A stretch of 60,540 bases of DNA from NCBI GenBank assembly GCA_038087875.1, contig JAXLNO010002420.1:62001-122540 (forward strand). The letters run 5' to 3'. The translations under genes were made by a program, and so were the position numbers. Source of the stretch: Malacoraja senta (Eukaryota). How positions within the stretch are numbered: the first letter of the stretch is position 1; each line of letters starts with the position of its first letter. The notes beneath the pieces were generated by a model. The model was not told the origin of the DNA, made no database searches, and was given only the letters and a program-made list of their open reading frames with translations. Positions 23,190 through 53,799 of the stretch are shown one piece after another.

Positions 23190-24233
23190 ATGTCGTTACA
23201 ACGTAACCCCACCCGTGTGACACAAAAAAAAGCCGTTAAAGGGAAACTGCAGACGGAAGAGGAAGGCCCTACAGAGGCCTCGGCCTCAGTTACAACGACG
23301 CCCCAGGAAGACCCTCCGAAGAAAACAAAACAGAAAAAGTCTGAAATGGAGGATCTTAAAACTTTTCTCGTTGCCGAATTGAAAACCTTTGGAGAGAATT
23401 TTGGAGAGAAATTTAAAGAGGAACTTTACTCTTTTAAGGTCGATTTTAAAGCAGAAATGCTTTCTACCGTTCAACAAATACTGGAAATCTGGAAAAGGAC
23501 GACGGAGGAAGAGGTCAAGGATCAGATGGAAGCGCTGGAAGCCAGGCTCGTTTCGGTGGAAGCGAGCGTTAGTATGGATGTGGCCCCCATTCATCACGAA
23601 CTTGATCAACATAGAACAGCGATAACCGAACTTGAGAAATGGGCGGCGACAAGTGCGGAAACTGTAAGTCAACTCCTTACTGAAAACCAACGCCTCTCCG
23701 ATATGGTGACCAAATTAAGTGATAAATGTACCGATTTGGAGGGACGTCAAAGACGTAAGAACCTAAGAATTGTAGGGGTGAAAGAAGGAAGTGAGAAGGA
23801 AATGGGCTCTCGGGACTTTGTGGCAGACCTATTACAAAAAGCCTTAAAATTGGATCACAAACCTTCACTCGGTCGAGCTCATAGAGCGCAGCGACGTCGT
23901 ACACAAGATGATGCCCATCCAAGACAAATCATCGTAAAGGTGCAACTGGATCATGAATTTGACGATATAATGAAGAAAATTGTTCGAGGCGGACAGCTCC
24001 TTTTTGAAGGTGTGAGATTCAGTATTTACCGAGATTATCCGGCAGAAGTCTTCAAGAAAAGAGCGCTGTTCACTGAGACAAAAAGAATACTGAAGAATGT
24101 ACCTGGTTTGAGATACGGCCTGCTTTATCCCGCAAGACTAAGAGTCACCTACAAGTCCAAGGAGCAATTTTTTACAGACCACGAAAAAGCACTGGAATAC
24201 GCCAAAGAAATCGGGAACTTGACCGTAGACTGA
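23190..24233 (+). CDS. L1/Tx1 ORF1p (coiled coil, RRM, CTD), 347 aa from ATG 23190
   Basis: Uninterrupted ORF with DLEGRQRRKNLRIVGVKEG, RAHRA, PRQIIVK, IYRDYPAEV and YGLLYPARLRVT motifs typical of L1 ORF1p. Confidence 0.9.
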   Translation: MSLQRNPTRVTQKKAVKGKLQTEEEGPTEASASVTTTPQEDPPKKTKQKKSEMEDLKTFLVAELKTFGENFGEKFKEELYSFKVDFKAEMLSTVQQILEIWKRTTEEEVKDQMEALEARLVSVEASVSMDVAPIHHELDQHRTAITELEKWAATSAETVSQLLTENQRLSDMVTKLSDKCTDLEGRQRRKNLRIVGVKEGSEKEMGSRDFVADLLQKALKLDHKPSLGRAHRAQRRRTQDDAHPRQIIVKVQLDHEFDDIMKKIVRGGQLLFEGVRFSIYRDYPAEVFKKRALFTETKRILKNVPGLRYGLLYPARLRVTYKSKEQFFTDHEKALEYAKEIGNLTVD

Positions 24234-25170
24234 AGAATTTACTTTACTCCTTAGGAGTCAAGGACTAACAGGACCGCCAGATCTAAAAGGACCTTTAAAG
24301 TTCTTTTAAGAGCTTTAAGGACATTCGAAAACCGAAATGGACGGAGGACATTGGAGAAAACCGTGATCTTTGTATTTTCTTTTTAAAAAAACTTTTTTTT
24401 TTTACTAATCATTATTATTATCTGTATATTCATATCTAACTATATATGTAACAACTAATACTTATTAAATATCCATATTACCACTAAAATTATTAACATT
24501 AACATTTCTCATAAAAATTTAATACTGTATATGATTGATAACAATGATTAATAATTAATAGTCTTTGATTAACGTAGAAATGAATTACATACTTATATTA
24601 TATAAGAGGATATGCATAATAAATTAGCCTACGTCATAATAAAACTTGACGGTTTTCCTCTTTATTTTTCAATTTAAAACTAAATTTATAGATTTAGCGA
24701 AGAAATTAATATGATATGTAGAGAATAATAACGTTGTGAATTTTTGCTATTCTTGAACTTTTCTGCAGGGATACGTGCTTATGTATGTATGCACATGGGT
24801 ATATATACATATATATATGTATGTATGGTGTGTGTGTGTATGTATGGGTATGTATATAAGTTTGTTACTCCCAAAGAAGTTATTTGAATGTTAGAAATAA
24901 TCTTTCTTTTTCTTCGGGCACGGAGCTGGAAATTTTTTTTTCTTACAAAGGCTACGGAAGTCTTTAGAATTCTAGCCACGTTAGTGTGGCTATCACTAAC
25001 TACACTAATTGTAGATGTAGTTCTTTTTCTTTCACCCTTTACTAATCAATTCTATCACTTTTTTCACTTTAAATATTTTTATAACTTAATGTTTGAATGG
25101 AAAAACAAGTCTAATACAAGGAGATGTGTTCGGAAGAGCGATGTATATGATTTTAAATTCATCTATCTGA

Positions 25171-28107
25171 ATGTGGGAAACGTTTAAAGCGTTTGTTCGA
25201 GGTACATTAATTTGCGCTCAAGCATTTTATAATAAAGAGAACAGGATTAAGCAACAAACATTGGAAAGTGAAATCAAGCAACTAGATATAGAAAATGCGA
25301 GAATGCCATCTATTTTAAAACATAATAAAATTGCTGTATTGAAATATAAATTAAATAAAATGTATTCAGAACAAGTAATAAAACTTTATCAAAAAACCAA
25401 ACAATTACATTTTGAATTTGGAGACAAACCACAAAAACTATTAGTACGTCAGTTACGAAAAATGGAAGGGGAAAAAATAATTCATAAAATTAGAACAGAG
25501 ACAGGAGAATTATTAAAAATGCCCAAGGACATAAATGATAGATTTCTCCAATACTATCATAACCTTTATTCAACTAAAACCGTAGGACAATCAGAAGGAA
25601 TAGCAGATTTTTTACTAAAATATAATTTAAAAGGTTTAGATTCAAACGATAGAGAATTATTAGAAAGGGAGATTACCATAAAAGATATTGAGGAGTCTAT
25701 TGGCTCTTTAAAAAATGGTAAAGCAGTAGGACCAGATGGTTTAGGCTCCGAATTTTATAAAAAATGTTATGATTTGCTTTGCCCACGTTTACAAAGACTG
25801 TATGAGCATATCTATACTCAACAGAAACTTCCAGACACTTTAAATGAATCTATAATAACACTTATTCCTAAAGCTGATAAAGATCCGGAAGACCCGGGAT
25901 CATATAGAGCAATTGCACTTTTAAATACAGATCAGAAAATATTAACTAAAATACTAGCGCATAGATTAAGTACAGTGATGAATAAATTAATACACCCTGA
26001 CCAAACAGGCTTTATTCAGAAACGGTACTCATATTATAATCTAAGAAGATTATTTAATATTATATATTCCAAGAGAATTATTAATGAAGATCTAGCAATA
26101 ATCTCACTTGACGCTGAAAAAGCATTTGATCAGGTCGAATGGTCTTATTTATTTTCGGTGATGGAAAATATGCAGCTAGGGGAGAAATTCTGTACATGGA
26201 TAAAACTGTTATATACAAATCCCACGGCTAGAATATTTACAAACCAAAGGTTGTCATCTAAATTTAGCCTATCTAGAGGTTGTAGACAAGGATGCCCGTT
26301 ATCTCCATTATTATTTGCGCTTGCTATTGAGCCACTTGCAGAAAGAGTCAGGGGGCATCCGGAAATACACGGATATAACACAAAGGACACAGTGAATACA
26401 ATTTCTCTATACGCAGATGATGTATTAATTTACATTACAAAACCAGAAATTAGTATTCCAAACTTATTAAAGCTAATAACCCAATTTGGTTCACTTTCAG
26501 GATACAGAATAAATTGGAATAAAAGTGAAATTATGCCAATAAGGGAACATAACAAACCGATAATACAACAATTTCCATTTAAAATAGTAAAGGAAAAATT
26601 TAAATATCTAGGTATTTATGTAACTAAGATATATACATCATTATTTAAAGCAAATTTTCCACCATTACTGAATAAACTACATAAGAATATTCAATACTGG
26701 AAAACACTTCCTATCTCAATGGTTGGCAAAATTAATGCCATAAAAATGATTTTTTTACCGCAAATATTATACCTTTTTCGGACAATTCCGATATATCTGG
26801 CAAAAAACTTTTGTTTTAAACTGGACTCTATTGTTAATGATTTTATCTGGGATTATAAGAATCATAGGATAAACAAAAGACATTTGTGTAAATCAAAAAT
26901 AAATGGAGGCTTGGTTTTACCCAACTTTTTGTTTTATTTCTGGGCAGTTAATATTAAAAATATGAATTTCTGGTTGGAAGAAATAGATCATCAACCAGAC
27001 TGGTTAAAAATGGAAAAGGAAGATTGTTTACCTTTTGATATCGGTTCGATATTATTTGCTACGTCTAAACTAAACAAAAAAATTTATAGGGAAAACCCTA
27101 TAATATTTAGTGCTATACGAATTTGGAAACAATTAAAAAAGACATTAAAATTAGATAATTTATCACTTTTTCTTCCAATTGTGAATAACCCTTTGTTTAA
27201 GCCTTCATGGTTGGACGGGGGTTTTACACAATGGAAGAATTATGGAATTAAAAATATGGGACAACTTTACAAGGAAGGCACTTTTCTGACATTTCAGGAG
27301 TTGCAACAGACTTATGGACTTCGAGGAAATGATTATTTCAGATATCTTCAACTTAGAGATTATGTTAAATCGAATACTCAAAATTTTCGAATTAGAAATT
27401 CAGAAATTCTTGATGAATGTTGGAACAAACATCCTAATACAGAAAAATTAATATCTTATATATATAATATCTTATTAGACAGTGACATTCCATCGACGGA
27501 CTTACACAGACAAACATGGGAAAAAGAATTAAATCAAATAATAACGAATGATACTTGGGAAGAAAGTTCGCAACACATACATCAATGTTCATTAAACGCC
27601 AGACATTCTCTAATACAATTTAAAGTAATACATAGGTTACATTATTCAAAAACAAAACTACATAAAATGTTTCAACATATCTCACCTATATGTGATAAAT
27701 GTCAACATTTAGAAGCTACCTTATCTCATATGTTTGCAAACTGTATAAAAATTAAAAAATTCTGGGTAAATATTTTCAGTATAATATCTAAAGTAACCAG
27801 CACACAATTGGACCCAGATCCAAAATTAATAATACTTGGAATATTAGAATTAAATCAAACATTTAAAACAACACAAAGAAACTTTATTGATTATAGTTTA
27901 ATAACAGGAAAAAAATTAATTCTAAAATTTTGGAAAGGCCCTACGACCCCCACAATCAAAATGTGGATTATAGAAATGACGGAGACCTTAAACGTGGAAA
28001 GAATCAGATTCTCCCTGTTGGACAAACAGGAATTATTCGTTGGAACATGGTCTCCTTTTATTGATTACTTAAAGGGTCAGAACAGTTCAGCACAGGAACC
28101 TGATTAG
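25171..28107 (+). CDS. L1/Tx1 ORF2 lacking the APE endonuclease (RT plus C-terminal Cys-rich region), 978 aa
   Basis: WETFKAFVRG, KAVGPDGLGSEFYK, SLDAEKAFDQVEW, GCRQGCPLSPLLF, LYADD, CDKC...HMFANC; no endonuclease motifs in the 940 nt between ORF1 and this ORF beyond FIYLNV. Confidence 0.92.
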   Translation: MWETFKAFVRGTLICAQAFYNKENRIKQQTLESEIKQLDIENARMPSILKHNKIAVLKYKLNKMYSEQVIKLYQKTKQLHFEFGDKPQKLLVRQLRKMEGEKIIHKIRTETGELLKMPKDINDRFLQYYHNLYSTKTVGQSEGIADFLLKYNLKGLDSNDRELLEREITIKDIEESIGSLKNGKAVGPDGLGSEFYKKCYDLLCPRLQRLYEHIYTQQKLPDTLNESIITLIPKADKDPEDPGSYRAIALLNTDQKILTKILAHRLSTVMNKLIHPDQTGFIQKRYSYYNLRRLFNIIYSKRIINEDLAIISLDAEKAFDQVEWSYLFSVMENMQLGEKFCTWIKLLYTNPTARIFTNQRLSSKFSLSRGCRQGCPLSPLLFALAIEPLAERVRGHPEIHGYNTKDTVNTISLYADDVLIYITKPEISIPNLLKLITQFGSLSGYRINWNKSEIMPIREHNKPIIQQFPFKIVKEKFKYLGIYVTKIYTSLFKANFPPLLNKLHKNIQYWKTLPISMVGKINAIKMIFLPQILYLFRTIPIYLAKNFCFKLDSIVNDFIWDYKNHRINKRHLCKSKINGGLVLPNFLFYFWAVNIKNMNFWLEEIDHQPDWLKMEKEDCLPFDIGSILFATSKLNKKIYRENPIIFSAIRIWKQLKKTLKLDNLSLFLPIVNNPLFKPSWLDGGFTQWKNYGIKNMGQLYKEGTFLTFQELQQTYGLRGNDYFRYLQLRDYVKSNTQNFRIRNSEILDECWNKHPNTEKLISYIYNILLDSDIPSTDLHRQTWEKELNQIITNDTWEESSQHIHQCSLNARHSLIQFKVIHRLHYSKTKLHKMFQHISPICDKCQHLEATLSHMFANCIKIKKFWVNIFSIISKVTSTQLDPDPKLIILGILELNQTFKTTQRNFIDYSLITGKKLILKFWKGPTTPTIKMWIIEMTETLNVERIRFSLLDKQELFVGTWSPFIDYLKGQNSSAQEPD

Positions 28108-33652: not shown

Positions 33653-33928
33653 ATTATCACTACGTTCAAGGACAGTTTGGTTGTGAGGTGAACGATCACA
33701 GTCCCACTGTAGGGATATTGAAGTTGGCTTTTGATGGAAGATATGCATTTAGTTTTGATAAGGACAAGCTAAAGTGGACGGTTCATGATCCAATAGCTGA
33801 GCCCTTCAAAGAGAAATGGGACAAGAATGAAAAAATGAACCGTTATTTCAAGAGCTTGTTAGAACATGACTGTGTGGATCTATGGCTTACATACTATGCA
33901 ATTGGAAAGACATACCTGACCAGAAAAG
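33653..33928 (+). CDS. MHC class I alpha2 domain exon (276 nt)
   Basis: Acceptor ttttatttcAG|AT, donor G|GTGAGT; canonical 276-nt length. Translates (N)YHYVQGQFGCEVNDHSPTVGILKLAFDGRYAFSFDKDKLKWTVHDPIAEPFKEKWDKNEKMNRYFKSLLEHDCVDLWLTYYAIGKTYLTRK, with C101/C164, H93, Q96, AFDG, K146-W147 and Y171. Confidence 0.95.
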
Positions 33929-34569
33929 GTGAGTTCAGAACAAAGGATGTTGTTTTGTGATGGTAGGCAATGAGTAATATTATCTCTGACCCAATCATGA
34001 CAGAGGGAAAGGTCATTCGGCCCATTGATTCTATGCTAGTTTTCTATGCAATGTCGACAAACTGTTCCACAGCTCTCTCTCACAACTTGCACTCAGCTCC
34101 CTCGGATTCTCCTTGCATTCAGCTCCACGACGGATAATTTGCAATGTCCAACTAACTCACCGGCATGTTTTTGGTATATTGGACAAAACTGGAGCACATG
34201 GAGGAAGCCAACTGAGTCATAAGGTCATAAGTAATGGCTGCAGCATTAGAACATTCGGCCCATCAAGTCGACTTCGCCCGTCAATCATGGCTGATCTATC
34301 TCTCCCTCCTAACCCCATTCTCCTGCCTTCTCCCCATAACCCCTGACGTGCATACTAATATAGAATTAAAAGTATCCATTGACGGACTCCACAGCCTTCT
34401 GTGGCAAATAATTCCACAGAATCACCACCATCTGACAAAATAAATTCCTCCTCATCTCTTTCCTAAAGGAATGTCCTTTAATATTGAGACTATGACCTCT
34501 CGTCGTAGACTCTCCCACCATTGGAGACATCCTCTCCACATCCACATCTATCCAAGCCTTTCACTATTT

Positions 34570-36118
34570 GTTTGTTTAAAAAAAAATATTGTTATTAGAA
34601 GCATGTGCATATCATAATACAAACATTTCTTATATATCAATCCTACTTTGCTAATAGGTGGGAGTCCAGCTATCAAAATAATAGTGGTCCTCATTTATCA
34701 ATTGTATATTAAATCTGCTTCTATTTATTTTTTTATTTTTTTATAGATAGAAAGTGAGAAATTTAAAAAAAGGCATGATAAAGAAGAATGGAATAATTTG
34801 CCAATAATACAACTTTGGAGATGGGTCCGTAGGTTATAAAGCATAACTATTCATCTAATCCTGAGCTTGGATTTCAGTCAGATTCCCATGCTGAACCAAT
34901 TTACCCTTTCAAAAAATCAATAAATGGAGACCATATTCTATTAAATAATTCATGTTTGTCAATTAAGACAAGTCTAGTTCTTTCCAAATGTAAGGTCTCT
35001 GATATTTCCATAATCCACATTTTAATTGTGGGGGTTATAGGATCTTTCCAAAATGTTAATATTAATTTTTCCCAATTATTATACTATAATCAAGAACGTT
35101 TCTTTGGTTTATTATAAGGCTTAGGCTTTGTTCTGATATTCCTAATATTATTAGTTTTGAGTCGGGATCCAGAAGGGGAGGGGCCATCTTGGGGAACGGC
35201 TGCTAGGTCAGCAGCTGTCCATTTAATTCACTTTTTTTTTGTAGTTCTAGTGAGTCCTGTGTTCTGTTTGTGGGGGAAATAGACTTTTTAATGTAGGGGG
35301 AAGGGGGTAACTATATTTCTAGGTCCCTACCTGGTCGGTGAGGCAGCTTTTTCTCCGGGCTGCCCCGTCGACCCGTCCTCGTGGCCTACCAGCGGGCGTG
35401 GAGCGCCGTTTTCCTGGAGGGGACCGCCCAGCACCTCGGCTTCGGTGGCGGCATAGCGCTAGAGCGGGCGATGCCTTGCCTGGGTCGCCACGCTGGATCG
35501 ACGTGCTGGAGCTCCGGTGAGCTGTGACTGCCGAGGTCAACACCTCCGGGCTGCGGGTCTGCGGAGCGGAGCGGGCGGTGCCGACTTCAACATCGGGAGT
35601 CTGGGAGCTCCAAACCGGCGCGGCCTTGTCGGCTTCGGAAGCCGCGGACTTCGGTAGGGAAGCGGCTGTTCCAGGTGGCCCAGCCGCTGAGAGGACTCTC
35701 CCGACGCCGGGGCAACAGCACCCGGCGAGAACGGCCAGGAACATCGGGCCTCCGTAGAGGCAATAGCTGAGGCCTCAATAGGCCTGACTTTTGGGAGAAC
35801 TGGGGATGGGGACTGGACATTGTGCCTTCCCCCACAGTGGTAACCATCCAGTGGGGGGATGATTTCTGTGTGTTAGTGATTATTTTAGTGTGTGTCCAAG
35901 ATGGCTGCTGGAAGGGAGAGTGTACGCTGGCGCGGTTTAGCTGCCGCTGCTCTCTCGTCACATTGTGTTTCTGATTTTTTTGTTTTTGGATCGAATTCTG
36001 TCTTTAATTTGTCTATTGGTGATGTCTTTACTATTTATTTTACTCCGATTATATGTTTTTTTACTTGTTAAATACTGTAAGGTGTCCTTGAGACTCTTGA
36101 AAGGCGCCCATAAATAAA

Positions 36119-36149
<31 letters not shown>

Positions 36150-36920
36150 GACTACTTCATAAATTATTCTGAAAATGTCCTTCCAGAAATTTTTGATTTT
36201 TATACAATTTACAAAGGTATGAGTTAAGTTAGCCTCTAAATGTTGGCATTTATCACAAATAGGAGAGATATGTGGGAAGATTCTATTTAATTTTGTTTTA
36301 GAATAATGTCATCTATGTAATACTTTAAATTGTATTAAGGCATGTCTGGCATTTAACGAGCATTGATGTATATATTGTAGACTTTAGTCCCAAATATCTT
36401 TCGTTATGGGTTGGCCTAATTCATTTTCCCATATAAATCCGTCAGCGGGACCTCACTATCTAAGAGGGTATTATAAATATGAGATATTAATTGTTCTGTA
36501 TTAGGATGTTTATTCAAACATTCATCAAGGATTTCTGGTTCCCTAGTTCTGTAATCTTGTGTATTTGATTTAATGTAATCTTTAAGTTGTAAATATCTGA
36601 AAAAGTTATTTGAGTGTGGTCCGTAAATCTGTTGTAACTCCTGAAATGAAAGAAAAGTGCATTTCCTAGAAAGATGTCCCATCTTTTTAATTCCATAATT
36701 TTTCCATTGTGTAAAGCCTTTATCCAACATGGAAGGTTTGAATAAAGGGTTGTTTATAATGGGGAGACAGTGATAAATTATCCAATTTTAAAGTCTTTTT
36801 TAATTGTTTCCAAATTCGTATACCACTATATATTATAGAATTTTCACTATAGGTTTTTTAATGCAATTTTGTGGGAGCAAATATAATTGAACCAATATCA
36901 AAAGGCAAACAGTCTTTCAC
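34570..36920 (-). mobile_element. Decayed 3' fragment of an L1/Tx1 related to the 23040-28463 element, split by the 35265-36150 repeat
   Basis: DKGFTQWKNYGIKKMG...FRYLQLKDYIKSNTQ...EILDECLNKHPNTE closely resembles ORF2 around 27210-27480. Confidence 0.82.
35265..36150 (+). mobile_element. GC-rich non-autonomous element with an L2-type 3' tail and (TTA)n
   Basis: Ends CTGTAAGGTGTCCTTGAGACTCTTGAAAGGCGCCCATAAATAAAAT(TTA)n; CpG-rich body with no credible ORF. Confidence 0.55.
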
Positions 36921-37244
36921 TATTTTGTATGATTCAATTGATGTCTTTCATATTAGTTAACCATGGATTTTCTTGACCACAGTTGACAGCCCCTAATGGG
37001 ATTGCATGTCTATCACACATCTCAAAAGAGCACAGCGTTAAGCTTCGAAGGGCAAAATTTACACGAGATGTGCAGGTCAAGTGTTTTTTTGCACAGAGAC
37101 AGCTTGATACCTAGAATGCGCTACCAGGAGTGGTGGTAGAGGAGGACATGATAATGGTGCTTAAGAAAGTTTTGGACAGGCTCGTGGGTATGCAGGGAAT
37201 ACAAGGATATGGATCACGTGCAGGCAGTGGAGATTAGTTTTGGT

Positions 37245-37530
37245 TTAGTTTAGAGATAGAGTATGGAAACAGCACCTTTGGGCCACTTAGTCTGCACTGA
37301 CCAGCAATTGCCCATTCACTATTTCTGTCCTACAAGCTAGGGACAATTTACAGAAGCCAATTAACCTGCATGTCTTTTGTATTTGGGAGGAAACCGGAGC
37401 CCCCAGAGAAAACCCACAGGGTGACAGAGAGAACGTACAAACTCCGTCCAGACAGCACTCTAGTCAGGATCGAACCCGGGTCTCTAATGCTGTAAGACAG
37501 CCACTCTATCACTGTGCCTCTGTGTTGCCT
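37245..37530 (-). mobile_element. HE1-like SINE
   Basis: Reverse-complement match to the SINE family. Confidence 0.75.
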
Positions 37531-40204
37531 TAGTTTAACTTGGTATCCTGTTCCACATGGACATTGCAGGCTGAAAGTCCTGTTCTTGTACTGTTCTATG
37601 TTCTATATATTCTCATTGGACAGGGCAGAGATATGTTTTCCACTCCTCCAGCCTCCATGTTGAATACTTCCTCCCAGTTTAAATCTGATTCAATTAGTCA
37701 ATCCATTTCTCCCTCCCCTCCTGCCCTGATCCCCATTCTATATTTTGAAGTAGTCATTCCCTTTTTCGCTCCCTGGTCTGTCTACTATCCCCACAACTTT
37801 CCTCTACTTTCCTGTCTTGGTGCAAGCAACATCTATCCATTTACCACTTTCCATAGACCCAGGCAGTTCTTCAAAGTGAAACAGCGTGAAACACTTGGAC
37901 TTCCAGTCAAATCTACTGCATTTGGTTTTCATGACGTAATCTTCCACATTGCATCAATGAAACAAATAGAATGGCTGCTTTCTGGAGAACCTGCATTCAA
38001 TCCATGAGACTTTCTAAGATTCATAATTCCTGCCACTTTAATTCTCCATTCAACACCCACCATGATCCATCCATCTGTACCTCTTACACTAGGATAACAA
38101 GGGTGAAAGTAGCCTTGAGGACCAACAACTCAGCTTCTGTCTGGACATGTTGCAGCCTTTCAAACTCAATTCCACATTCAACAAGTTGCATTCCCTGTCG
38201 ATAAAAGAACTAGTCCTTTCAACTGTTAAGTTGAAGACAGAAAGAACAGATGCAAGAAGTATGAAGCAGGATTCCAAGCTGAAAGATTACATAATCATGT
38301 CTTCCAGATGCTGCCTGAGCCACTGAGTTACACCTGCACGTTTTTGTGTGTTTTTAAATTACAGTTAAGTTATCCACCTGCAAAATCAGGACAGCCTGAC
38401 CTACTTGAGTACTGCAGTATGTGCTGCATTTTATATAACTCTGTTTAGTTTCATGCATGCAGAGATGCAGTGAAATGGTTTGGATGGAACAGCAGATGCT
38501 GGACACCCCGTCCCTTCTCTCCAGAGATGCTGCCTGCCCCGCTGAGTTACTCCAGATTTTTGTGTCTATCTGCAGTGAAATGGTTGTTCTGCATTCTCCC
38601 CAGTCATGTCATACTGTACATAAGTACAATACGTCCACTTCTGGAACAGCACGCAGAGATCCACCACATTCCAGTACTATCTTGCAGCTTTCAAGTCTCT
38701 GAGAAGTCTGATTTTGCCCTAAGGAAATACCCAATTTCTAATTTTCTCATGTTAAGGCCCAGTGTCATAACAGCACTGGATTGATGAAGTTGAGGCGCCT
38801 GCCTCAGTTTAAGTTTTTCTGTTTCAAGATTGTGACCGAACCCTCATCACTGAACTGTGCCGCAGTGCCACCCCATTACGTATCAGTCCCAATTATCTTT
38901 CAACATGCTGGAATCACTTGTTTTTTTAATCCTTTTTAGACTTTTTTCATGAATTGTTCAGCATAAACAGTTATGCTACAACAAAGTTAAGCGCAGCTAC
39001 CACTTAGTTCCAGAGACGTAACAACACAAGAGATAGTGTTGGAAGAATGATCAAACTCACACATAGTGGTTATTAGTAACTTTGCAGAGGAAACACAAGG
39101 TGCTTTCTTCTCAGCATGCTTACTACCAGTCTACCAGAGAGAGAGAGAGAGCTGTCTAATAAGCCTGTGGGCGGAGCCACAGTATGAGTGACACTAAACT
39201 ACAGATAGGCACAGGGATAAGTTTCGGTTTATTATTGTCACGTTTAGTTTCGAGGTACAGCATGGAAATAGGCCTTTTGGCCCACTGAACCTGTGCTGAC
39301 TAACGACCACCCAAATATTAGTTCTATCCTACACACTATGGACAATTTACAGAAGCCAAAAAACTTACAAACCTGTACGTCTTTGAATGTGACGGAACTG
39401 TAGCACCCGGAGATAACTCACATGGTCACAGGGAGAATATATGAACTCTATATAGACAGCACCCATTGTCAGGATTGAACTTTGGTCTGTGGTACTGTAA
39501 GGCAGCAACTTTCCAGGTACAGTTGCATGCTATCCAATTGGATGAGATAACAACATACATATATATGATCAAGTCAACTCAAGTACTGAAGGTAGAGCAA
39601 AAGGGAAGATACAGAGTGTGGCATATAGTTCTCAGCAATGTAGCACACCAGTTCCATTAGATAAGGGTTTCGACACAAAACGTGACACATTCCTTCTCTC
39701 CAGAGATGCTGCCTGACCCGTTGAGTTACTCTAGCATTTTGTGTCTATCTGCGGTTTAAACCAGCATCTACAGTTTCTTCCTGCATAGTTCCATAAACAA
39801 AGTCCACTGTCTGTAATGGGGTAGTGGTCAATTGGACAGTACCCTAGCTTATGGAACGATCATTCAGAAGCCTGATTTTCTCCTCAGTTATCAAGTTTCC
39901 GAGTAAGCCATTTGGTCCTCTAACCTGCCCACCATTCAATATGACCATGGCTGACGTTCCTCAGGCATCAACTCCTGTTCGGTGCCAGTTCCTCATTGCA
40001 CTCAATTCTCCAATCTTTCAAAAGTTTAACTACCGCCATATTAAATGCTTCCAATGATTTTGTCTTCACAAATCTCTGGCGCCAGAGAATGACCACACTC
40101 TGCAAAAAGAGATTTTGTAAACAAATGACTGGTCTCTTTTATCTCTTATTGAAGAGGAGTGAAAATACTGCCAATTTTAAGCTTGTCCCCTCCCCAATTG
40201 GCCC

Positions 40205-40570
40205 TCATTTCGTAACTTGTATTAGTTTATTATTGTCACGTGAACTGAGATACAGTCAAACGTTTTTCTGTGTGTTATCCAATCAGATCATACTTCACAT
40301 GTGCAATCAAGCCATCCACAAGTAGATCAGTGCAAAGAGCAAAAATATTCAGAGTGCAGAATATCGGGTTACAATATCATAGCATTACAGTTACAGAGAA
40401 AGTGCAGATCAAAAAGAGTTGCAAGGATCACAATGAGATTGGTTGGAAGATCAGGGCAACATCTTATCTTACATGAGAATCATTCAGTAGTCCAATAACA
40501 GCGGGGAAGAAGCTGTTCCTGAATTTAATGGTACGTACTTTCAAACTTTGTGTGTACTGTCTTAACAGGG
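40205..40570 (-). mobile_element. Rex1/Babar-type 3' fragment just upstream of the alpha3 exon
   Basis: QSLKVRTIKFRNSFFPAVIGLLN on the minus strand plus the family tail. Confidence 0.6.
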
Positions 40571-40737
40571 AGCGTATAATCCCTTTTAAACCACGTGGTT
40601 GGTTAATGGTGACGAAAGAGGCAAAATGGGGCAGATGTAGACCGTAACTTGGTGGTTGTAGTAGACTGAAGAATATTTTGTGATGGGTGACTGCACGTTT
40701 TACTGAAGGTGAAAATAACCAACTTACTGTCTTGTAG

Positions 40738-40997
40738 TTTCCCCTGAGGTCACTCTCGCTGCCCGCCCTGATGATCATTCAGTCCTGTACTGCACTGTGT
40801 TTGGATTTTACCCATCAATGTCAGCTGGTTGCAGAATGGTCAACATGTCTCTGAGATGAAATCTTCTGGGGTCGTACCCAACAACGATGGAACATATCAT
40901 CTAAGGTCTGTCCTTGAGTATGATCCGTATGATGGGAAACAGTATTCCTGTCATGTCGATCACAGCAGCCTGCCCGGTGGGAAGACCATCATCTGGG
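40738..40997 (+). pseudogene. MHC class I alpha3 (Ig C1-set) exon carrying a frameshift
   Basis: Acceptor cttgtAG|TT, donor G|GTAAGA. The 5' part reads VSPEVTLAARPDDHSVLYCTVFGFYP. The 3' part, in another frame from 40814, reads INVSWLQNGQHVSEMKSSGVVPNNDGTYHLRSVLEYDPYDGKQYSCHVDHSSLPGGKTIIW. Read through unshifted, it stops at TGA 40857-40859. Confidence 0.9.
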
Positions 40998-41073
40998 GTA
41001 AGAACGTTAAATATTCTTTCGTAGATAATCATTATCTTCTGTTGTTTCCATTTTAATCATTGTGACTACATCT

Positions 41074-42123
41074 AGGTATGTTACAAAACTTACCTTCAGC
41101 GGCGCTGCAGTTCTGTCACTGCCCGTGTGCGCGACTTTGGCGCCTTCGAGATGGGGGCGGGTTTAAAATGCGATATTTCGGCAGCCTGTTCTAAACGATC
41201 TTGAACAGGCTAAATAGTTGATGAAGAAAAATCGCTTCGACTGCCGTTTTATTAAGTTTATTAATATTAGCGCTTTATAATTTAATTGTTGGAGTAAAAT
41301 TAAAATCATCTTCAAATGCCGTAAACGCCGACAACGGGGACGGATTTCACGCACGGGACAAGGCAAGGTACACCATTTATTTTTTCATATAAACTTGCTT
41401 CTTAGGATGCCTTTAATAAAAATTTCAAGTTGCGAAAATGTGATTATTTAAATATACCAACTGGCCGTATTTTTCCTGCCGATATTGGGGTTTAATTCAG
41501 TGCAACCGCAGCGTTCCAAACCAGCGCGTTCCACAAAATCCCACACGCAAGATGATTTAAATGGCCATTAATTTACAGGAATTAAACACTAAATTCCTTC
41601 CATTTGGCCTATAAATTAATGACAATGAGATTTAAAAATCATTTTATATTGTGAATTCTTGTGTGAATGTTATTTGGACACTTAGGCTTTTTAAAAATGT
41701 TAACTTTTTCTTAAGAAATGGATAGATATTTAGATATTTAGATCTAGTAATTGAATTTTGTAATTAGCTACAATTGGGTAACTAACTAATTATATGCTTT
41801 AATTTCAGGTCATCCAAGTAAGATTGTTTCATATTTGTTTCAGAATGCTTCAATCTATAATAACTGAAAATTTCATTAAGTTCTCTTAATTTTTAAGAAA
41901 GTTATGGGCTTTTGACTGTCCTTGATCTCAGCTTTTGTGTTAAGTCAATGGAAAAGCAATAGGGAACAAGATGCTAATTTCCGAGTATGAAAATGGCCAA
42001 ACTTTTTTAATACTGAAGATATGAAAGTGAATTAGGTGTCAAATTAAACTTCTTTTTATGCTTTATCTGATGGGATAAATTACAGATTTGATTTTTTAAA
42101 TCTCAAAATGTTGTGACATTGCT
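41074..42123. mobile_element. 1.05-kb non-coding putative DNA transposon in the alpha3-TM intron
   Basis: Imperfect TIRs (AGGTATGTTACAAAACTT vs reverse complement AGCAATGTCACAACATTT); flanking repeat ACTACATCT/ACTACATCC. Confidence 0.55.
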
Positions 42124-42419
42124 ACTACATCCCATATTCCAAGATGCTTAAACTTTCTTTGTTTAGTGGTGTTGCTCTAAGTAATCACGTAATCAGCACC
42201 CACTCTCCACATGAGCAGAATACTTTGTCAACAGAAAATTTATTAAAAGTAAGTAAATAAATAACTAATATAAAAGGAAGGAGTATTTGGGATGCTCAGT
42301 GGTGGAACTGATATCCATGAAAGGTATGTTTAAATATAAAATGAATCTTTCCTCATGATGTGATTAACAGCAAGGCACTGGGGGAGTACATGCCCCAATC
42401 TGAATCAATGGTCTGAAGT

Positions 42420-42960
42420 GGAAATGATTGCGAGCTTCATGTTCCTTGGCATGAATATATCCAATATTCGGTCATGGACTGGCCACATAGCCAAGGGGGC
42501 ACACCGACACCTCTACTTCCTCCGGAGACTGAGAATATTCATCATGTCTCTGGTGACTCCAGCAAACATCTATAGATGCTGCTAGAGAAAGCATGTTGTT
42601 GGGTTGCATCACATCTTGATTTGGGAACTGCACTGCCCAAGACTGCAAGAATATACAAAGAGTTAAAGATCATCACACAGCCCAGACTCCCCACTATTGA
42701 CCCAATCTACACCAGGTACCCTTGGAAAACGAGACTTATCCCACCCCGGTCATTCCTCCTTCCTGCTCCCATCAGGCAATAGGTACTGAAAGTTGAAAAT
42801 AAGCACTGCCAGACTCAGGAACACCCCCTTTCCACCTGTTAACAGGCTTCGGAAGGGTTCTTCCATAATGTAGGTTTAAGGCCCGATTCACCTCAACCTC
42901 ATTGAACATTGAACATTGTCTATGGAACTGATGCGTCAGAATGCTGAGAACTATATTCTG
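42420..42960 (+). mobile_element. Old Rex1/Babar-type fragment
   Basis: IAKGAHRHLYFLRRLRIFIMSL...NIYRC resembles the element at 6483-7215. Confidence 0.55.
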
Positions 42961-43974
42961 TACTCTGTATCCTCCTCTTTGCTCTATCTATTGTTTTTGA
43001 GTTTTTTATTTATGTATAGTATTATCTAATTTGTTTGGATACAAAACAAACCTTTGCACTGTATCTTGAAACATCTGACATTAATAAAACTAAACCTAAT
43101 GAAGTAAGTTCTGTGACGCAAGTTACAGATTTAGCAACGAAAAATATAACTGCCTGACAAACAGCGATCGTAGAAGTTTGATTCCAGGTATGCTGCACTA
43201 ACCTACACAAATGTTCACTTTTGAAGATTCCCTCGAACAATGCACAACTAAGGAATCTGATGTTTCACTCTGAAGACTGTTGACATACTCCAGAACTTAA
43301 TTTCCAACCTATCTATGTATCATCAGCAATCTAGGCTACAGCGCCACCAGTCCCTTCATCTGCTCTTAATACTAACGATAAGTAGTTCACTTTCTTGCAT
43401 TGATTCCCAACCTGCAGTTGCAGTTTCCCAACCTGAACACTCCTTTAAGTCAACTCTCTGCTTGCTCTTAATTGTTTTTCCATTCATGCTAATTATTACC
43501 CCCAATGTCATAAGCCATGTGCCTTTGCATCACTTGATCAGATATCTTATGAAAATCCAGATATTGTGGCGACATCTGGTGGTCAGGCCACTTATTGCTA
43601 GGACCCTCGTCAGGTGAGCTGGGACTATCACGTGACAGGGTTTTGGTGGGAGTTGGTGATGAGTTAATCGCCAGTCAACTGGTGTGCCCGATAACAACGG
43701 CAGGAACTTTGCTCAAGTCCTTACTAAACGCGAGTGTGCCAAAACTGTATTTCTTAAAAAAACATTGGTTTATTCACGACGCTTGAATCTCTACAATATA
43801 TTGTATTTCTTTTGTTTCTCATTCCAATTTTGCTACCTATTCTGCTTTTCCATCATTTTGTTTTTGAATTTTAGGCTGTGCACACCTGCAAACTACTGCT
43901 GCTCAAATATACATTGTCTACTGGTTCCTGTTGTATTTTCAAAGAATTCAAATCAATTTCTCAAACAAAGTTTG

Positions 43975-44190
43975 AAGAAGGGTCCCAAAACGAAATGTCA
44001 CCTGTCCATGTGTAGGGAGAAACTGCAAATGCTGGTTTACACCGAAGATGGACACAAATTGCTGGAATAACTCAGCTGGTCAGGAGAAAGGGAATAGGTG
44101 ATGTTTCGGGTCACAATCCTTCTGACTGAGTCCATGTTCGCCAGATATGTTGCCTATTTCGCTGAGTTACTCCAGCATTTTGTGTCTATC
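43975..44190. mobile_element. Foldback cluster of hammerhead-type PLE repeats
   Basis: Alternating orientations of the GCTGGAGTAACTCAG / CTGAGTTACTCCAGC unit. Confidence 0.6.
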
Positions 44191-44758
44191 ATGTATATTC
44201 TTTCCACTGACTGGTTAGCACGTAACACAAGCTTTTCACTGTACCTCAGTACTCGTGACAATAAACTAAACTAAAGCTTTTGTGTAAATCAGTATCTGCA
44301 TCTCTTTCTTTCTACAATTTTCCTGTTAATGCACTTTATTGTTTTGTTATTACTTAAATGTTCTGCATTACTGAAAGGAATCCAGCATTTTCCCCAAAAC
44401 AGATGTTAGATTATATAGGGTTAAAGCTTTTTGCTTTCAATTCGCCTTCTTTCATGAATTAAGTTGTGGCTGTGATGGTGCCATAGATCATAGAGTTGTA
44501 CAGAACATATATTGTCCCTTTGCCATGTTGCAGAACGTGATTCAAAACACCATATCATCTTATATACCTTGAAAAGCGCCAAAAATAGACACAAAATGCT
44601 GGAGTAACTCAGCGGTCAGGTAGCTTCTCTGGAGAAAAGGAATAGGTGGCATTTCGGGTCGAGACCCTTCTTCACTCTGAAGTCTTCAGACAGTGCCCAT
44701 CTATTTAGCTGCACAGCTTAACAACTGATTTGTAAAATTATGCATTCTTATTTTTCAG

Positions 44759-44866
44759 AAGGAAATAGGAAGAAAGACAGGCACATAGGCCTTATTGCCG
44801 TGTGTGTGCTGTTATTGCTGGCTATTGTCTTGGCAGTAATTGTTTGGTGGAGAAAAAAGAGGAGAG
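44759..44866 (+). CDS. Connecting peptide/transmembrane exon of the MHC class I-like gene (108 nt)
   Basis: Acceptor ttatttttcAG|AA, donor G|GTAAGA, phase 1/1. Translates (E)GNRKKDRHIGLIAVCVLLLLAIVLAVIVWWRKKRR: a hydrophobic stretch of about 21 residues followed by a basic stop-transfer cluster. Confidence 0.88.
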
Positions 44867-45119
44867 GTAAGATGGAAAAATTGTGATGCACTGTTGCTAG
44901 TAAAGGTATTGGGCTTGAAGAAATGATCGATCTCAAGTAGGATAAGGCAGCAGCTACACCTGAAATGCCTCGACAGTCACCACTGTCAACTAGCCTTTGT
45001 GCTGTTGTTAAATGTTTCTGATAATCAGATTTTTTATAATTGTGAATTCAGTGTAATTTTTTTTTAAACATTATGGATTCACTGCCCCAAATCCTAGAAA
45101 TATCAATGAGTCATTAAAA

Positions 45120-45430
45120 AGTACAGCATGGAAGCAGTCCTTTTGGCCCACCGTGTCCATGCCAACCACCAACCACCTGTTCTCATGAATTCTATCTCAT
45201 TGCACCTTCTCATCCAGTCACCCACCCACAAGGGGCAATTTACAGTGGCCAATTAAACTATAAACTGACACATCTTGGGATGTGTGAGGAAGCCGGAGCC
45301 CCTGGAGGGATCCAATGCGGTTACACGGAGAACGTGCAAACTCCACATAGATGGCACTCGAGGTCAAAATTGAACCCGGGTCTGTGTCGCAGTGAGGCAG
45401 CAGCTCTACCAGTTGTGACACTGTGCTGCT
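45120..45430 (-). mobile_element. HE1-like SINE
   Basis: Reverse-complement match to the SINE family. Confidence 0.72.
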
Positions 45431-45507
45431 CTGTTGGGGGCTCGCACTGTTCATGATCCAAGTCAGCTACGAGGCAGATTGGTTGCAGTTTAACATTTAC
45501 TAGTTTT

Positions 45508-45800
45508 GTTTAGTTTAATTTAGAGATACAGTAACGAAACAGGCCCTTCGGCCCATCGAGTCTGCGCTGACCAGCGATCCCCGCACATTAACACTATCCT
45601 ATACACACACACCATGCGAATTAACCTACATACCTGTGCGTCTTTGGAGTGTGGGAGGAAACCTTAGATCTTGGAGAAAACACACGCGGTCATGGGGAGA
45701 ACGTACAAACTCTGTACAGACAGCATCAGTAGTCGGGATCGAACCCGGGTCTCCGGTGCTGCAAGCGCTGTAAGGCAGCAACTCTACCGCTGCACACAGT
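45508..45800 (-). mobile_element. HE1-like SINE
   Basis: Reverse-complement match to the SINE family; TTTAG tail at the left end. Confidence 0.8.
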
Positions 45801-48269: not shown

Positions 48270-51200
48270 CTTTCTTTTAAAATCTTTTTATTGTTGTTTT
48301 TCCAAAAAACAAAAACAAAAATAAAACATAAAAAACAGAGCAAAAATAATAATGATAAACATAACAATAGTATTGATACATAGGGATCAGGATTAAACAC
48401 ATTAATAACAGGTATAACCTTATATGAGACCAGTGTCAAAATACACAATGAATATAGACCTCTCGGTCCCTATGTAAATATAGTTAAATCTTTAAAAGGA
48501 AACATAAATGTAAAAAAAAGCAAAGATAAAAAGACAAAAAGAAAAAGAAAAAACAAAACCCCCCTAAACTAAAAAAATAAATAAAAAATTGATAATAATA
48601 AAATAAGAATAAAAATAAAATAAATAAATAAAACAAAACAGAGCAAAACCGAATCTGAACTGAGAAATTCAACAATTTAAGTCTGTTTGTCGTCAAGTCC
48701 GTTCCACCCTATGAAGGTAAAATAATTTTTATAACGGTTAAAGAGGGAACAATTTATGTTGTATGAAAGTGTTCCATAAATGTTCCCCAAGTCTTATCAA
48801 ATTTAACCAAGGGTTCAACAATGTCACTTCTGATTTTTTCTAAATTTAAACATGATATCGTTTCAGAATACCACTGGAGTGTGGTCGGAGGGTTGGAATC
48901 TTTCCATTTAAAGAAAATAAATCTTCTGGCAATTAATGTGGTAAAAGCAATCAACCGATGGGCGGAGTGGGACAAATGAATAGAATCTAACATTGGTAAC
49001 CCAAAAATTGCAGTAATAGGATGAGGTTGTAAATCTATACCTAAGACTACCGAAATAGTATCAACAATTTCTTTCCAATATTTTTCCAAAAGAGGGCAGG
49101 ACCAAAACATATGGGTCAGTGATGCCACTTCAGAGTTACATCTGTCACAGGTAGGATTTATATGACCATAAAAACGAGCTAACTTATCTTTTGACATATG
49201 AGCTCTGTGGACCACCTTGAATTGTATCAAAGCGTGTCTTGCACACATTGAAGAGGTATTAACTAATTGAAGGATCCTCTCCCATTTCTCTATAGATAAA
49301 GACATTTGGAGTTCTCTTTCCCAGTCATTCTTAATTTTATCAAATGTATTTATTTGTAATTTTAAAATCAACTTATGAATAGTCGTTATTAATCCTTTCT
49401 GATAAGGGTTCAACTGTAAAAAATATTCCAAAATTTCGGGTTGATGTGGTAGCGGAAAAAGGGGTAGTTCCTTTTGTCTAATTTGTAAATATCTAAAAAA
49501 GTGTGAATTAGGTAAGTTATATTTATTGGAGAGTTGTTCGAAAGACATAAAACAACCCTCCAAAAACAAATCACGAAAAGCTACTAATCCCTTCCTCTTC
49601 CATAACAAAAAAACTTGATCAGTACTAGATGGTTGGAAGAGATATTTGGATAAAATCAGATCGTCCAAAAAACTTACGAAATTGAAACCGTATTCGGAAC
49701 GTATGTCTTATTATTGGGTTCGTCATATATTTATTCAATCTCGTAATTGTAAAAGGTAACGAGGTCCCTAGAATAGAAGCCAATTATAGCCCTTGTAAGG
49801 AATCACGTTCTAGGTTTATCCATCCAGGGCATTGGGTATCTTCTAAATCTTTTGTCCAAAATGTTAAATAACGAACATTGACTGCCCAATAGTAGAGTCT
49901 AAGGTTCGGCAATGCCAAACCACCAACTTTTTTTGATTTCTGTAGGTATTTTTTACCTAGTCTGGGATTTTTATTCTGCCATATATATGAAGAAATTTTA
50001 GAGTCTATAATATCAAAGAAAGATTTGGCAATAAAAATTGGTATCGTCTGAAATAAATACAGAAATTTAGGTAAAATGAACATTTTAATAGCATTGATTC
50101 GGCCAATTAAGGATAAGGACATTGGTGACCATTTAGTGAACTGATGTTTAATATGGTCAATTAAAGGAATAAAATTAGCTTTAAATAAATCCTTGTGTTT
50201 CTTGGTGATCTTAATACCTAAATAAGTAAAACTTTCAGTAGTCAATCTAAATGGAAACTGTCCATAACTCGAAACAAAATTATTTAATGGGAAAGCTCAC
50301 CCTTACAAAGATTTAGTTTATAACCAGAAAAACTACTGAATTGATTAAGTAATGCTACTATTGCCGGAATAGATTTCTCAGGGTTAGAAATAAATAATAA
50401 CAGATCATCTGCATAAAGAGATAGCTTATGTGTCTTATTCCCGCGGACAATACCAAAAATATTAGGGGATTCCCTAATAGCAGTGGCTAAAGTTTCCAAA
50501 GCAATATCAAATAGTAAAGGACTTAAGGGACAGCCCTGTCTAGTACCTTGAAAGAGCCTGAAAAAGGGGGATCTCTGATTATCAGTAAATACAGAAGCCT
50601 GAGGTATAAGATATAGCAGTTTGATCCAAGAGATAAATTTTGGACCAATCTTAACTTTTTCAAGTATATTGAATAAGTATTCCATTCTACTCTATCAATA
50701 GCCTTCTCGGCATCAAGTGAGATGACACATTCTGGGGTTTTATTAGACGCTGTATACACAATATTTATTAATCTCCTAACATTAAAGAAAGAGTAACGAT
50801 TTTTAATAAAACCTGTCTGATCTTCAGAGATAATTTGCGGTAAAATCTTTTCCAATCTCATAGGTAATATTTTGGAAAGAATTTTAAAATCTACATTTAA
50901 CATTGATATAGGTCTATATGATGTCACTTCAGTAGGGTCTTTATCTTTTTTTTAAATTAAAGAAATAGAAGCTTCATAAAAAGATTGTGGTAATCTATTC
51001 CTTAAAAAGGCATCTTTAAATACCTTGCATAGCCATGGAGACAATAAATTTGAGAAATACTTTAAAAATTCTACTGTAAACCCATCTAAACCGGGAGCTT
51101 TACCAGAATTCATTGAAAAAATTGCTTTCTGTATTTCTTCTTCCGTGATGGGTTCATCTAACAACAGAGACTCATTGTATGGTAAATTTGGTAAGTTCAG

Positions 51201-53450
51201 TTTCTTTAAAAACTCATGCATTATATTGGAATCTGTAGGAAAATCTGATTGGGATAGGGAGGTATAAAATTCCTGAAAGGATTTATTAAGTTCGTCATGG
51301 TCTACAGTTACTGTACCATCCCGTTTACTCACTTTAGTAATCTGACGCTTGGCCGACACTGCTTTCAATTGATTAGCAAGTAATTTACCAGATTTTACGC
51401 CATTTATATAAAATTTACTTTTGGTTTTAAGTAACTGGTTCTCAATCGGTGATACTAATAACAAATCATATCTCAATTGAAGTTCAACTCTATTCTTATA
51501 GAGCTCTAAACTAGGAGCTTTTGAATATTTTTTATCAATTTCTTTAATCTCGTCAGCCAATGTGCGTATTTCTTTTTGTGTTTGGTTTTTTAATCCCGCG
51601 GAGTATGAAATAATTTGTCCACGAATATATGCCTTAAAAGCATCCCAAACTATACCATTGGATATCTCTTCATTAGAGTTTGTCAAGAAGTAAAAAGCAA
51701 TCTGATCTTTCATAAACTTAATAAAGTTTAAGTCTTGAAGCAGAGTAGCATTAAATCGTCATTGTTTAGCACTAAACTTTGAATCAGGTAGTTTGATCAA
51801 TAGTTTCACTGGTGCATGATCAGAAATAGCAATTGCATCATACTCACATGAAATGACCGATGGAACTAGCCGAGAATCTAGTATAAAATAGTCGATCCTA
51901 GAATAATTATGATATACATGAGAGAAAAATGAAAATTCTTTGTCATTTGCGTGTAAGAATCTCCAAATTTCTAACATTCCCGAGTCAAGTAAAAAATAAT
52001 TAATAAAATTAGCTGATTTATTTGGAAGCACATGATCAGATGTAGACCTATCAATCGAGGGATTCAAACTGCAATTGAAGTCTCCACCCATTATTAAAAA
52101 GTGTTCATTTAAATTAGGAAAGGATGCAATTAACTGTTTAAAAAACTCAGGGCGATCAATATTTGGTGCATAGACATTCACCATAGTGACTTTTTGCCTA
52201 TAAAGGACACCGGTAATCACCAAGAATCTGCCATATGGATCAGAAATTGTTTCATAGTGAACAAACGGAATTGAGGGGTCAATAAAAATAGAGACTCCTT
52301 TCACCTTAGCCTGTGAATTTGAATGAAACTGCTGTCCTCTCCAAAACTTGAAAAATCGTGACTTGTCGTCTTGCCTTACATGAGTTTCCTGAACAAAGAT
52401 AATCTGAGCATTTAGTCTGTGAAGAACTTTTTTTTAAAAATCCTCTTAATGGGATGGTTCAAGCCATTCACATTCCATGAAAGGAAATTAGTAAAGGCTC
52501 TGTCTTACCTGTTTGCGGTCATCGGCGGTGAAGCGCGGCGTCGCCGGTAGCGGGGACCGCGCGGCAACGACGAGAGCGGCGAGCCTATCCACCGGAGCGC
52601 CGCACGGATGCTGCGCGGGGGCCGAGTTAATTCAAACACGGCGGGTCCCACGTGCTTGCGGTAAGTAAAAAAAAGGGCGGGCCGACTGCGATGACGTCGG
52701 CCCGCCGCACGTGACTCACGAGCGGCGGCTGTGGCGGCGGCCAACCTGATCGCGGCGCTGTAGCGGTGGCTGTGCCTGCGGCCGCGCAGCACACGTGCCT
52801 CACTGGCGGCGGCACTGCCTCACTGGCGGAGGCTGTGGCAGTGGAGGTTTGACGCACGGCGCTCGAGCCACACTGGCGGCGGCCCGTGCGGGCGGCCGTG
52901 CCGCACTCGTGCATCACTGGTGGAGGTTGTGCGGTGAGTATATAGTTTTCGACATTGTCGATTTTATTTTAGCACCGTGCGGTGTTGGGAACACCGCCGC
53001 ACGGCCCCGGAATTGTACGTTCTCACGAGTGCGCGGTCTATGGCGGCAGATTCTTCCCGTTTCGCCGCCAATGACCGCAGACTCGTGAGACAGGCCTTTA
53101 ACTTTATCCATATTGCTTGTAAAAATCATGTGGGATGTAATGGGTTAATTTTTTGAAGCCTAAAAGTTCATAATACTGGAAGAAGAAAAATCTAGGGCGG
53201 AGTCAGAAGTGACGACATTACAGACAATTTTGTAGTTCAGAATTTGCACAAATGGAGATCACTAAATAGGGAACAAAAGACCCCTCCCCCTCCCCCCTCC
53301 CACCCCTGTAGAACCCCAAACTGACCAAAAGACAGTCAGCAATCTACCTAATCCCCTCCCCAATCCCATCTCTCCCAGTAACAGCGCTCAGCATAAAAAG
53401 AATAATATTTAACCACTACGTCATAACACATTCGTTATTATCTCTTTGAG
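48270..53450 (-). mobile_element. Second L1/Tx1-clade LINE: ORF2 with endonuclease and RT, frameshifted; ORF1 not seen; left end is the 3' A-rich tail
   Basis: NFLSWNVNG, QETH, NVYAPN, GGDFNC, SRIDYF and ISDHAP (endonuclease); GKAPGLDGFTVEF, SLDAEKA, GTRQGCPLSPLLF and LYADD (RT); CDRC...HMFWSC. Split across several ORFs. Confidence 0.9.
52495..53098. mobile_element. GC-rich PIF/Harbinger-like MITE inserted at the start of L1 ORF2
   Basis: Imperfect TIRs AGGCTCTGTCTTAC / GTGAGACAGGCCT(T); TAA on both sides; sub-terminal GACCGCA/TGCGGTC also inverted. Confidence 0.7.
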
Positions 53451-53799
53451 AGAGAAGAAGAAAAAAATACAGACTGGCATGGAATGCTGCTTATTATTAT
53501 CCAAGGTCAAGATATGAAAAACAAGAACTGCGTTCTCTTAGTTTGTCTAACGACAGGGGAACACGAATTAACAAAGAAATTCTTAAAAGAATATATATAA
53601 AAGAAAAACAACTCATCCAGTTAAATTCTTAATCATTACCAAACGAAATGTTGTCAAAATAGGAACAGTAAATCTCCAATTATAACTTAATCAGCTATCA
53701 ATTACTCCCCTTCCTCGTCGTAGCTCTTCAGAAGGCTGGAGGCTTATTCCACATAAGACACAATTCCCTGGTCTTTTAGAATATATCCACGCATTATCT

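Follow-up and report, generated by a model that had tools for sequence, protein, structure and literature searches.

Class I molecules without an alpha3 domain include the HLA-G4 splice form, ULBP/RAE-1 and EPCR, and the genes for ULBP, RAE-1 and EPCR contain no alpha3 exon. Among sharks and rays, UGA is described in a review citing personal communication (PMC12562908) as an MHC-linked, CD1-like lipid-binding class Ib lineage that is single-copy or low-copy. The PDB entry 9ch4, with the title "Crystal structure of shark nonclassical MHC class I, UGA" (release 2026-03-18), was retrieved by structure comparison from an AlphaFold model of the Amblyraja radiata protein (pLDDT 68.7), and a paper citing 9CH4 was looked for in the literature and none was found. 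Here we analyse a gene of the same kind in a stretch of 60,540 nucleotides from the skate Malacoraja senta (contig JAXLNO010002420.1; the whole stretch is called the window below). Its domain order is identical to that of shark UGA 9ch4, with an identity of about 65–70% as judged from the printed alignments and not computed. The spacing C-x6-P-x2-I-x-V-x-W is common to 9ch4 and the intact skate relatives, the alpha3 domain of 9ch4 reading FYP-QP-INVTW where the intact skate loci have FYP-PA-I. The main difference is that the window copy, unlike 9ch4, carries a 7-nt deletion in alpha3 and has no last exon. Moreover, the UGA lineage is multicopy in skates, in contrast to the single-copy description.

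Lineage, exons and collinear skate loci

By its matches to PDB chains, the window gene is a skate copy of the UGA lineage, the non-classical MHC class I of sharks and rays. Chain 9ch4_A was the best PDB match for the alpha1 exon (residues 3–86, E 1.1e-36), the alpha2 exon (residues 90–179, E 4.2e-35) and the back part of alpha3 (residues 207–268, E 1.6e-25), and the front part of alpha3 aligned to its residues 182–206. The matches to 9ch4 scored 123–128 bits, whereas the class I chains ranked next, among them the shark classical chain 6lup, did not exceed 50 bits. The alpha1/alpha2 superdomain of the peptide-binding type is recognisable, since Pfam MHC_I matches the alpha2 exon (E 2.1e-13); the Pfam scan gave no match in the alpha1 exon, which is still matched by the UGA structure (9ch4_A, E 1.1e-36). 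The C1-set alpha3 domain does not lie in one open frame and can be recognised only in a second frame. The locus is thus a member of the UGA lineage by descent, without the coding capacity for a full protein.

A protein search with the alpha2 exon against 1.84 billion representatives found three close clusters, the members of which are annotated class I proteins, namely XP_055521884, XP_055521885 and XP_055486429 from Leucoraja erinacea, XP_032898133 from A. radiata and XP_078272153 from Rhinoraja longicauda. More distant homologues in the same search came from sawfish, stingray, manta and several sharks. Furthermore, Logan contigs of transcript length encode complete 334-aa proteins of intact relatives with the alpha3 domain included, so the normal gene has an expressed form that contains alpha3. 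The features of the window gene are listed here with their coordinates, strand and basis.

13092–13352, plus strand: alpha1 exon, open, phase 1 (codons 13094–13351; match to 9ch4_A)
33653–33928, plus strand: alpha2 exon, open, phase 1 (codons 33655–33927; Pfam MHC_I and 9ch4_A)
40738–40997, plus strand: alpha3 (C1-set) exon, frameshifted, 260 nt instead of 267 (two frames; C1-set and 9ch4_A)
40811–40812, plus strand: position of the 7-nt deletion, where CCACCGG is missing from between two CCA repeats (five-way DNA alignment)
40857–40859, plus strand: premature stop (TGA) read in the shifted frame, 138 nt ahead of the donor of alpha3
44759–44866, plus strand: connecting peptide/transmembrane (TM) exon, open, phase 1, reading GNRKKDRHIGLIAVCVLLLLAIVLAVIVWWRKKRR
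48273–53786, minus strand: 5.5-kb replacement with a degenerate L1-type LINE (collinearity break, Pfam)

An earlier reading, made from the sequence only, had described the alpha1, alpha2 and TM exons as free of stops and with good splice sites, and all three are indeed open, in phase 1 and bounded by AG and GT. The alpha1 exon has the acceptor ctag/GG and the donor CAA/gttagt and is 85% identical to L. erinacea XP_055521884 (tblastn), and the alpha2 exon is 95% identical to the protein P0001. The alpha3 exon also has an AG acceptor (ttgtag/TT) and a GT donor (TGG/gtaaga). If the donor of the TM exon is read through, GKMEKL is added, followed by a stop. No match to a leader exon upstream of alpha1 was found within the window by tblastn with short-query settings; from the collinearity with the intact loci, this exon should lie about 8–11 kb upstream of the first base of the window, so its absence within the window is no lesion. 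The promoter likewise falls outside the window. An in-frame hydrophobic stretch just 5' of alpha1 (LTIIVLFYLCLG) was weighed as a possible fused leader and rejected, because it has no Met and because the same sequence is the end of an intron in the intact loci, which have leaders of their own. Within alpha1, codon 63 (13278–13280) shows a window-specific change from Ser to Cys (TCT to TGT), leaving an unpaired cysteine in the alpha1 helix region, and codon 25 shows a change from Val to Glu. Constraint may just have begun to relax at these two codons, or the changes may be of no consequence.

The window was compared with intact loci of three skate genera, four in all: A. radiata XP_032898133.1 (L001), L. 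erinacea XP_055486429.1 (L002) and XP_055521885.1 (L003), and R. longicauda XP_078272153.1 (L004). The window is collinear with all four through introns and flanks, as megablast blocks show, and thus holds an orthologous or paralogous position, with an identity of about 90% to L001, L002 and L003 and about 85% to L004. Exon boundaries and phases are identical in the window and the intact loci, and the codon alignment shows 8 differences between the window and A. radiata among the 86 residues of alpha1 and 3 among the 91 of alpha2. The window was not accepted as a paralogue from within A. radiata, L. erinacea or R. longicauda, since its divergence from their loci is about 10%, 10% and 15%, respectively, and other organisms are much closer to it, at 2–5%. 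A Rhinoraja copy was also rejected, since the window is without the residues common to all Rhinoraja copies. The two L. erinacea loci, L002 and L003, both on unplaced scaffolds, differ from each other by about 6% of their DNA (exon dS 0.037), which nearly equals the distance of either one from A. radiata; either old paralogy or deep MHC-linked haplotypes could account for this.

The introns and flanks are rich in repeats. Intron 1 contains, at 23148–28104 on the plus strand, a LINE with an uninterrupted ORF of 978 amino acids (25171–28104; Pfam RVT_1, E 1.7e-40), preceded by an ORF of 361 amino acids (23148–24230) that has no Pfam match, with a GC content of about 0.30 there. Among the blast blocks listed, the intact loci have no collinear match to the window from 18.7 to 32.1 kb. 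The LINE in intron 1 may be a young, lineage-specific and possibly still active insertion. Further reverse-transcriptase fragments occur, for example at 17357–18581 on the plus strand (RVT_1, E 6e-26 at 17357–18145), and SINE-like repeats recur across the window, for example at 1146–1348, 6277–6455 and 45227–45761. In addition, contigs of relatives reach enormous depth over 41.0–42.2 kb and 43.9–44.8 kb, which marks high-copy repeats in the intron between alpha3 and TM.

The deletion in alpha3 and the replaced terminal exon

In the alpha3 exon, frame A (codons from 40740) reads SPEVTLAARPDDHSVLYCTVFGFYPSMSAGCRMVNMSLR and ends at the TGA at 40857–40859, while frame B (codons 40811–40996) reads PINVSWLQNGQHVSEMKSSGVVPNNDGTYHLRSVLEYDPYDGKQYSCHVDHSSLPGGKTIIW and matches the Pfam C1-set (E 3.8e-13). 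The frame changes after ...CTVFGFY and the stop follows 15 codons later, with the remaining part of the C1-set domain in the other frame (PINVSWLQNGQHV...YSCHVDHSSLPGGKTIIW). This bears out the frame switch and the stop at 40857 that had been seen before, and the earlier estimate that about 7 nt are missing turns out to be exact: in the alignment with the four intact skate loci the lost letters are CCACCGG. All four intact loci read TTT TAC CCA CCG GCC ATC AAT (F Y P P A I N), whereas the window reads TTT TAC CC- ------ -A TC AAT, so that exactly CCACCGG is missing and part of the P-P-A codons is removed. At the edges of the deletion TAC ends at 40811 and CCATC starts at 40812; the letters of the intact form at 40809–40816 would be TACCCACCGGCCATC. 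On the protein level, FYPPAINVSW is present in each of the intact proteins XP_032898133, XP_055521885, XP_055486429 and XP_078272153. The T and the G of the premature stop, at 40857–40858, are themselves specific to the window, where ACC has become ATG in the true frame.

The local context of the missing letters, CCACCGGCCA, is not that of a homopolymer, and the microhomology at the ends of the deletion suggests replication slippage. Loss of letters outside homopolymers and between repeats is typical of real slippage deletions, unlike the homopolymer errors that are usual in long reads.

The sequence-only reading had taken the gene to have a lesion in alpha3 only and to be otherwise open. This proved wrong, since the terminal coding exon is gone from its collinear position and a LINE-bearing insert stands in its place. 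Downstream of the TM exon the intact genes have one more coding exon, the last, which in A. radiata reads DYQNIPPNQNVPC and then a stop (L001, 87707–87748), and a terminal exon of the form DYQ(N/T)I.PNQN..C was found in every intact locus that reaches that far. Collinearity of the window with L001, L003 and L004 ends at 48272 and restarts at 53787, with both junctions clean, and between those anchors the intact loci hold 1.6–1.8 kb that include the last coding exon and the start of the 3' UTR. A search for the terminal exon anywhere in the window, by tblastn, by a regular-expression scan and by blastn with word size 7, found none. On the minus strand of 48273–53786, the ORFs match Pfam Exo_endo_phos and zf-RVT, and in the ORF list the frame of this LINE contains two in-frame stops and shifts at least twice. 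As judged from the alignment, the gene therefore has neither the usual stop codon nor the first part of the 3' UTR. In short, the intact skate genes have TAC CCA CCG GCC ATC in alpha3 and a terminal exon, and the window has neither.

Age of the deletion and constraint on the exons

Contigs of three related organisms (A, B and C) were compared with the window over 40500–45100. In organism A, one contig of 490 nt spans the exon and parts of both flanking introns (40591–41071) with 15 other letters; its depth is 56.7, and the other single contigs of that run on the stretch have depths of 42–60. This contig carries ACCGGCT behind 40813, giving TAC CCA CCG GCT ATC, the intact form. The contig of organism C (depth 80.2) carries CCACCGG behind 40811 and is intact as well. 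Organism B is the closest by word share and has contigs of about 100 nt, the depth of which rises from 32.5 at 40811 to 5351.8 at 40813. Organism B is probably also intact, as such a jump in depth is expected from clipped contigs of the intact form and not from sequence identical to the window. At 40856–40858 the ATG of the window corresponds to ACC in organisms A and C, and organism B has C at 40857 in all of its depth and at 40858 in most of it. Since organisms A and C carry the 7 nt, the deletion is private to the species or the haplotype of the window. The alpha3 deletion is young.

The codon alignment of the window and the four intact loci covered four exons and 300 codons, and changes on the window branch were assigned by parsimony with Rhinoraja as the outgroup. 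Pairwise dN/dS is 0.3–0.4 for all pairs, whether the window is included or left out. On the window branch there are 8 synonymous and 10 non-synonymous changes over 184 synonymous and 707 non-synonymous sites, which gives an omega of about 0.33 and a synonymous excess over neutrality with a binomial P of 0.02. The introns changed at a rate of 3.3% on the same branch (3,426 aligned intron sites), and from this rate 29.4 changes would be expected in all exons, where 19 are found (P = 0.03), and 8.3 in alpha3, where 2 are found (P = 0.011). Alpha3 is thus the best-conserved exon on the window's own branch, and the coding sequence as a whole, with an omega of about 0.33 and fewer exon changes than the introns predict, did not evolve neutrally. 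The numbers are small and they point one way, namely that the gene, and alpha3 above all, appears to have been constrained for most of the window branch. Such constraint fits a late or recent inactivation and not an old pseudogene. In addition, the sequence-only reading had proposed dN/dS per exon as a check, in which a relaxed alpha3 would speak for a two-domain form; the outcome was the opposite, as alpha3 is the most conserved exon.

Explanations of the locus and its place among skate genes

Considering these results, we hold it probable that the window contains a young pseudogene or null allele of a UGA-lineage class Ib gene with two lesions. The pseudogene interpretation, which had been put forward before as one of two possibilities, gains support from the private 7-nt deletion with its stop and from the second, independent lesion; the disabling changes are the 7-nt deletion with a premature stop and the replacement of the terminal exon by the LINE-bearing insert. 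The copy would have been under purifying selection for most of its history since the split from the Amblyraja and Leucoraja genes, and would then have been disabled recently by two independent events. In one event, a 7-nt deletion between the CCA repeats, probably by slippage, shifted the frame after FY, and an mRNA containing alpha3 would be a target of nonsense-mediated decay, with its premature stop 138 nt before the next exon junction. In the other event, the LINE-bearing insert took the place of 1.6–1.8 kb that held the last coding exon together with the stop codon and the first part of the 3' UTR. Both events would lead to loss of function. It counts against a dead gene that the exons show no decay beyond the two lesions, and a gene still functional would look alike.

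A sub-case of this explanation is that the lesions lie on one haplotype only, a null allele beside a working allele or working paralogues, so that UGA function is kept in the species. Such an allele is consistent with a deletion that is recent and private, with the multicopy state and turnover of MHC-linked class Ib families in skates, and with the difference of about 6% between the two loci or haplotypes of L. erinacea. Nothing found here stands against it, and we consider it a tangible possibility, although a less probable one than the explanation that includes it.

The 7-nt gap could also be an error of assembly or consensus, in which case alpha3 would be normal and the locus would be a working UGA copy, or one that has lost only the exon for a tail of 13 residues. 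In favour of such an error, alpha3 apart from the gap differs from the relatives at a single codon on the window branch, and the exons look selected. Moreover, a search of sequencing runs for reads of the assembled individual gave word shares of at most 0.47 with the alpha3 stretch and 0.74 with the alpha2 exon, and no run of the window's own sample was found among them. However, the missing letters lie in a non-homopolymer context between two CCA repeats, and the second lesion is structural, with clean junctions, and much harder to obtain by a consensus error; an error at the 7-nt site would still leave the last exon missing. We therefore regard this explanation as unlikely.

The last explanation is that the locus still works as a two-domain molecule, in which alpha3 is skipped, alpha2 is joined to TM and the protein ends by read-through (RRGKMEKL) or in a new 3' exon. 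As had been proposed, the arithmetic of such a form holds: all introns are in phase 1, and joining 33928 to 44759 gives ...YLTRK-E-GNRKKDRHIGLIAV..., which stays in frame and open through the TM exon; no stop interrupts the alpha1, alpha2 and TM exons, whose splice sites are good. The evolutionary part of the proposal, a relaxed alpha3, failed. The predicted little-skate isoform X4 (XP_055521883.1, NCBI) has the same YLTRK-EGN junction (...TYLTRKEGNGKKDRH...), so that skipping of alpha3 may occur at some level in the gene family; this isoform is a predicted read-through model fused to the neighbouring GPR139-like gene. At its locus, LOC129716032 (L003, JAMYXN010000161.1), a GPR139-like 7TM gene that lies downstream is joined to the UGA-like gene in the NCBI models, and the predicted isoform X3 skips alpha1 as X4 skips alpha3; these skipping isoforms may be artefacts of read-through or real minor splice forms.

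Against a working two-domain molecule, alpha3 is the most conserved exon on the lineage and is not relaxed, and its acceptor and donor are the same as in the intact genes, which leaves nothing to force alpha3 out of the message. Close relatives lack the deletion, so a two-domain form would have to be of very recent origin, and the gene no longer has its normal terminal exon or the beginning of its 3' UTR. A query without alpha3 found no other such protein of the lineage besides the predicted read-through isoform, and the named or transcript-derived members of the lineage all keep alpha3. An alpha3 that is absent, decayed or unspliceable beside constrained alpha1 and alpha2 is not what the window presents. 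Among the RNA runs, searched with two stretches, none contained more than 0.13–0.19 of the sampled words, and one run that was listed as RNA covered introns and behaved as DNA. The architecture of HLA-G4, ULBP/RAE-1 and EPCR is matched only by a hypothetical exon-skipped product of the window gene, and in contrast to ULBP, RAE-1 and EPCR the alpha3 exon is present in the window, well conserved, flanked by normal splice sites and only recently broken. For these reasons a locus still working in this way is very improbable. It is just as far-fetched that the frameshift made a minor alpha3-skipping splice form the sole productive message, for a beta2-microglobulin-independent alpha1-alpha2-TM molecule of a CD1-like, lipid-binding class Ib kind. 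If it were true, this two-domain form would stand at the very start of a route that may have produced molecules of the ULBP/RAE-1/EPCR type, and would be a rare snapshot of how class I-like molecules without alpha3 arise.

A young pseudogene or null allele, the explanation we prefer, agrees with the number of related genes in skates. On CM130181.1, a chromosome of 41.5 Mb in R. longicauda, at least 9 distinct UGA-like proteins are annotated that are more than 90% identical, and L. erinacea has 2 UGA-like loci or deep haplotypes. The number in R. longicauda is a marked expansion of UGA in comparison with the single-copy or low-copy description in the review (PMC12562908). UGA-like genes are therefore multicopy in skates, and as the lineage is multicopy, dead copies are to be expected. 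For annotation, the gene in the window can be named as a member of the UGA lineage, with both lesions mapped to the base. Copy number turns over constantly in multigene families of MHC class Ib, and one recently inactivated copy in a skate is biologically ordinary.
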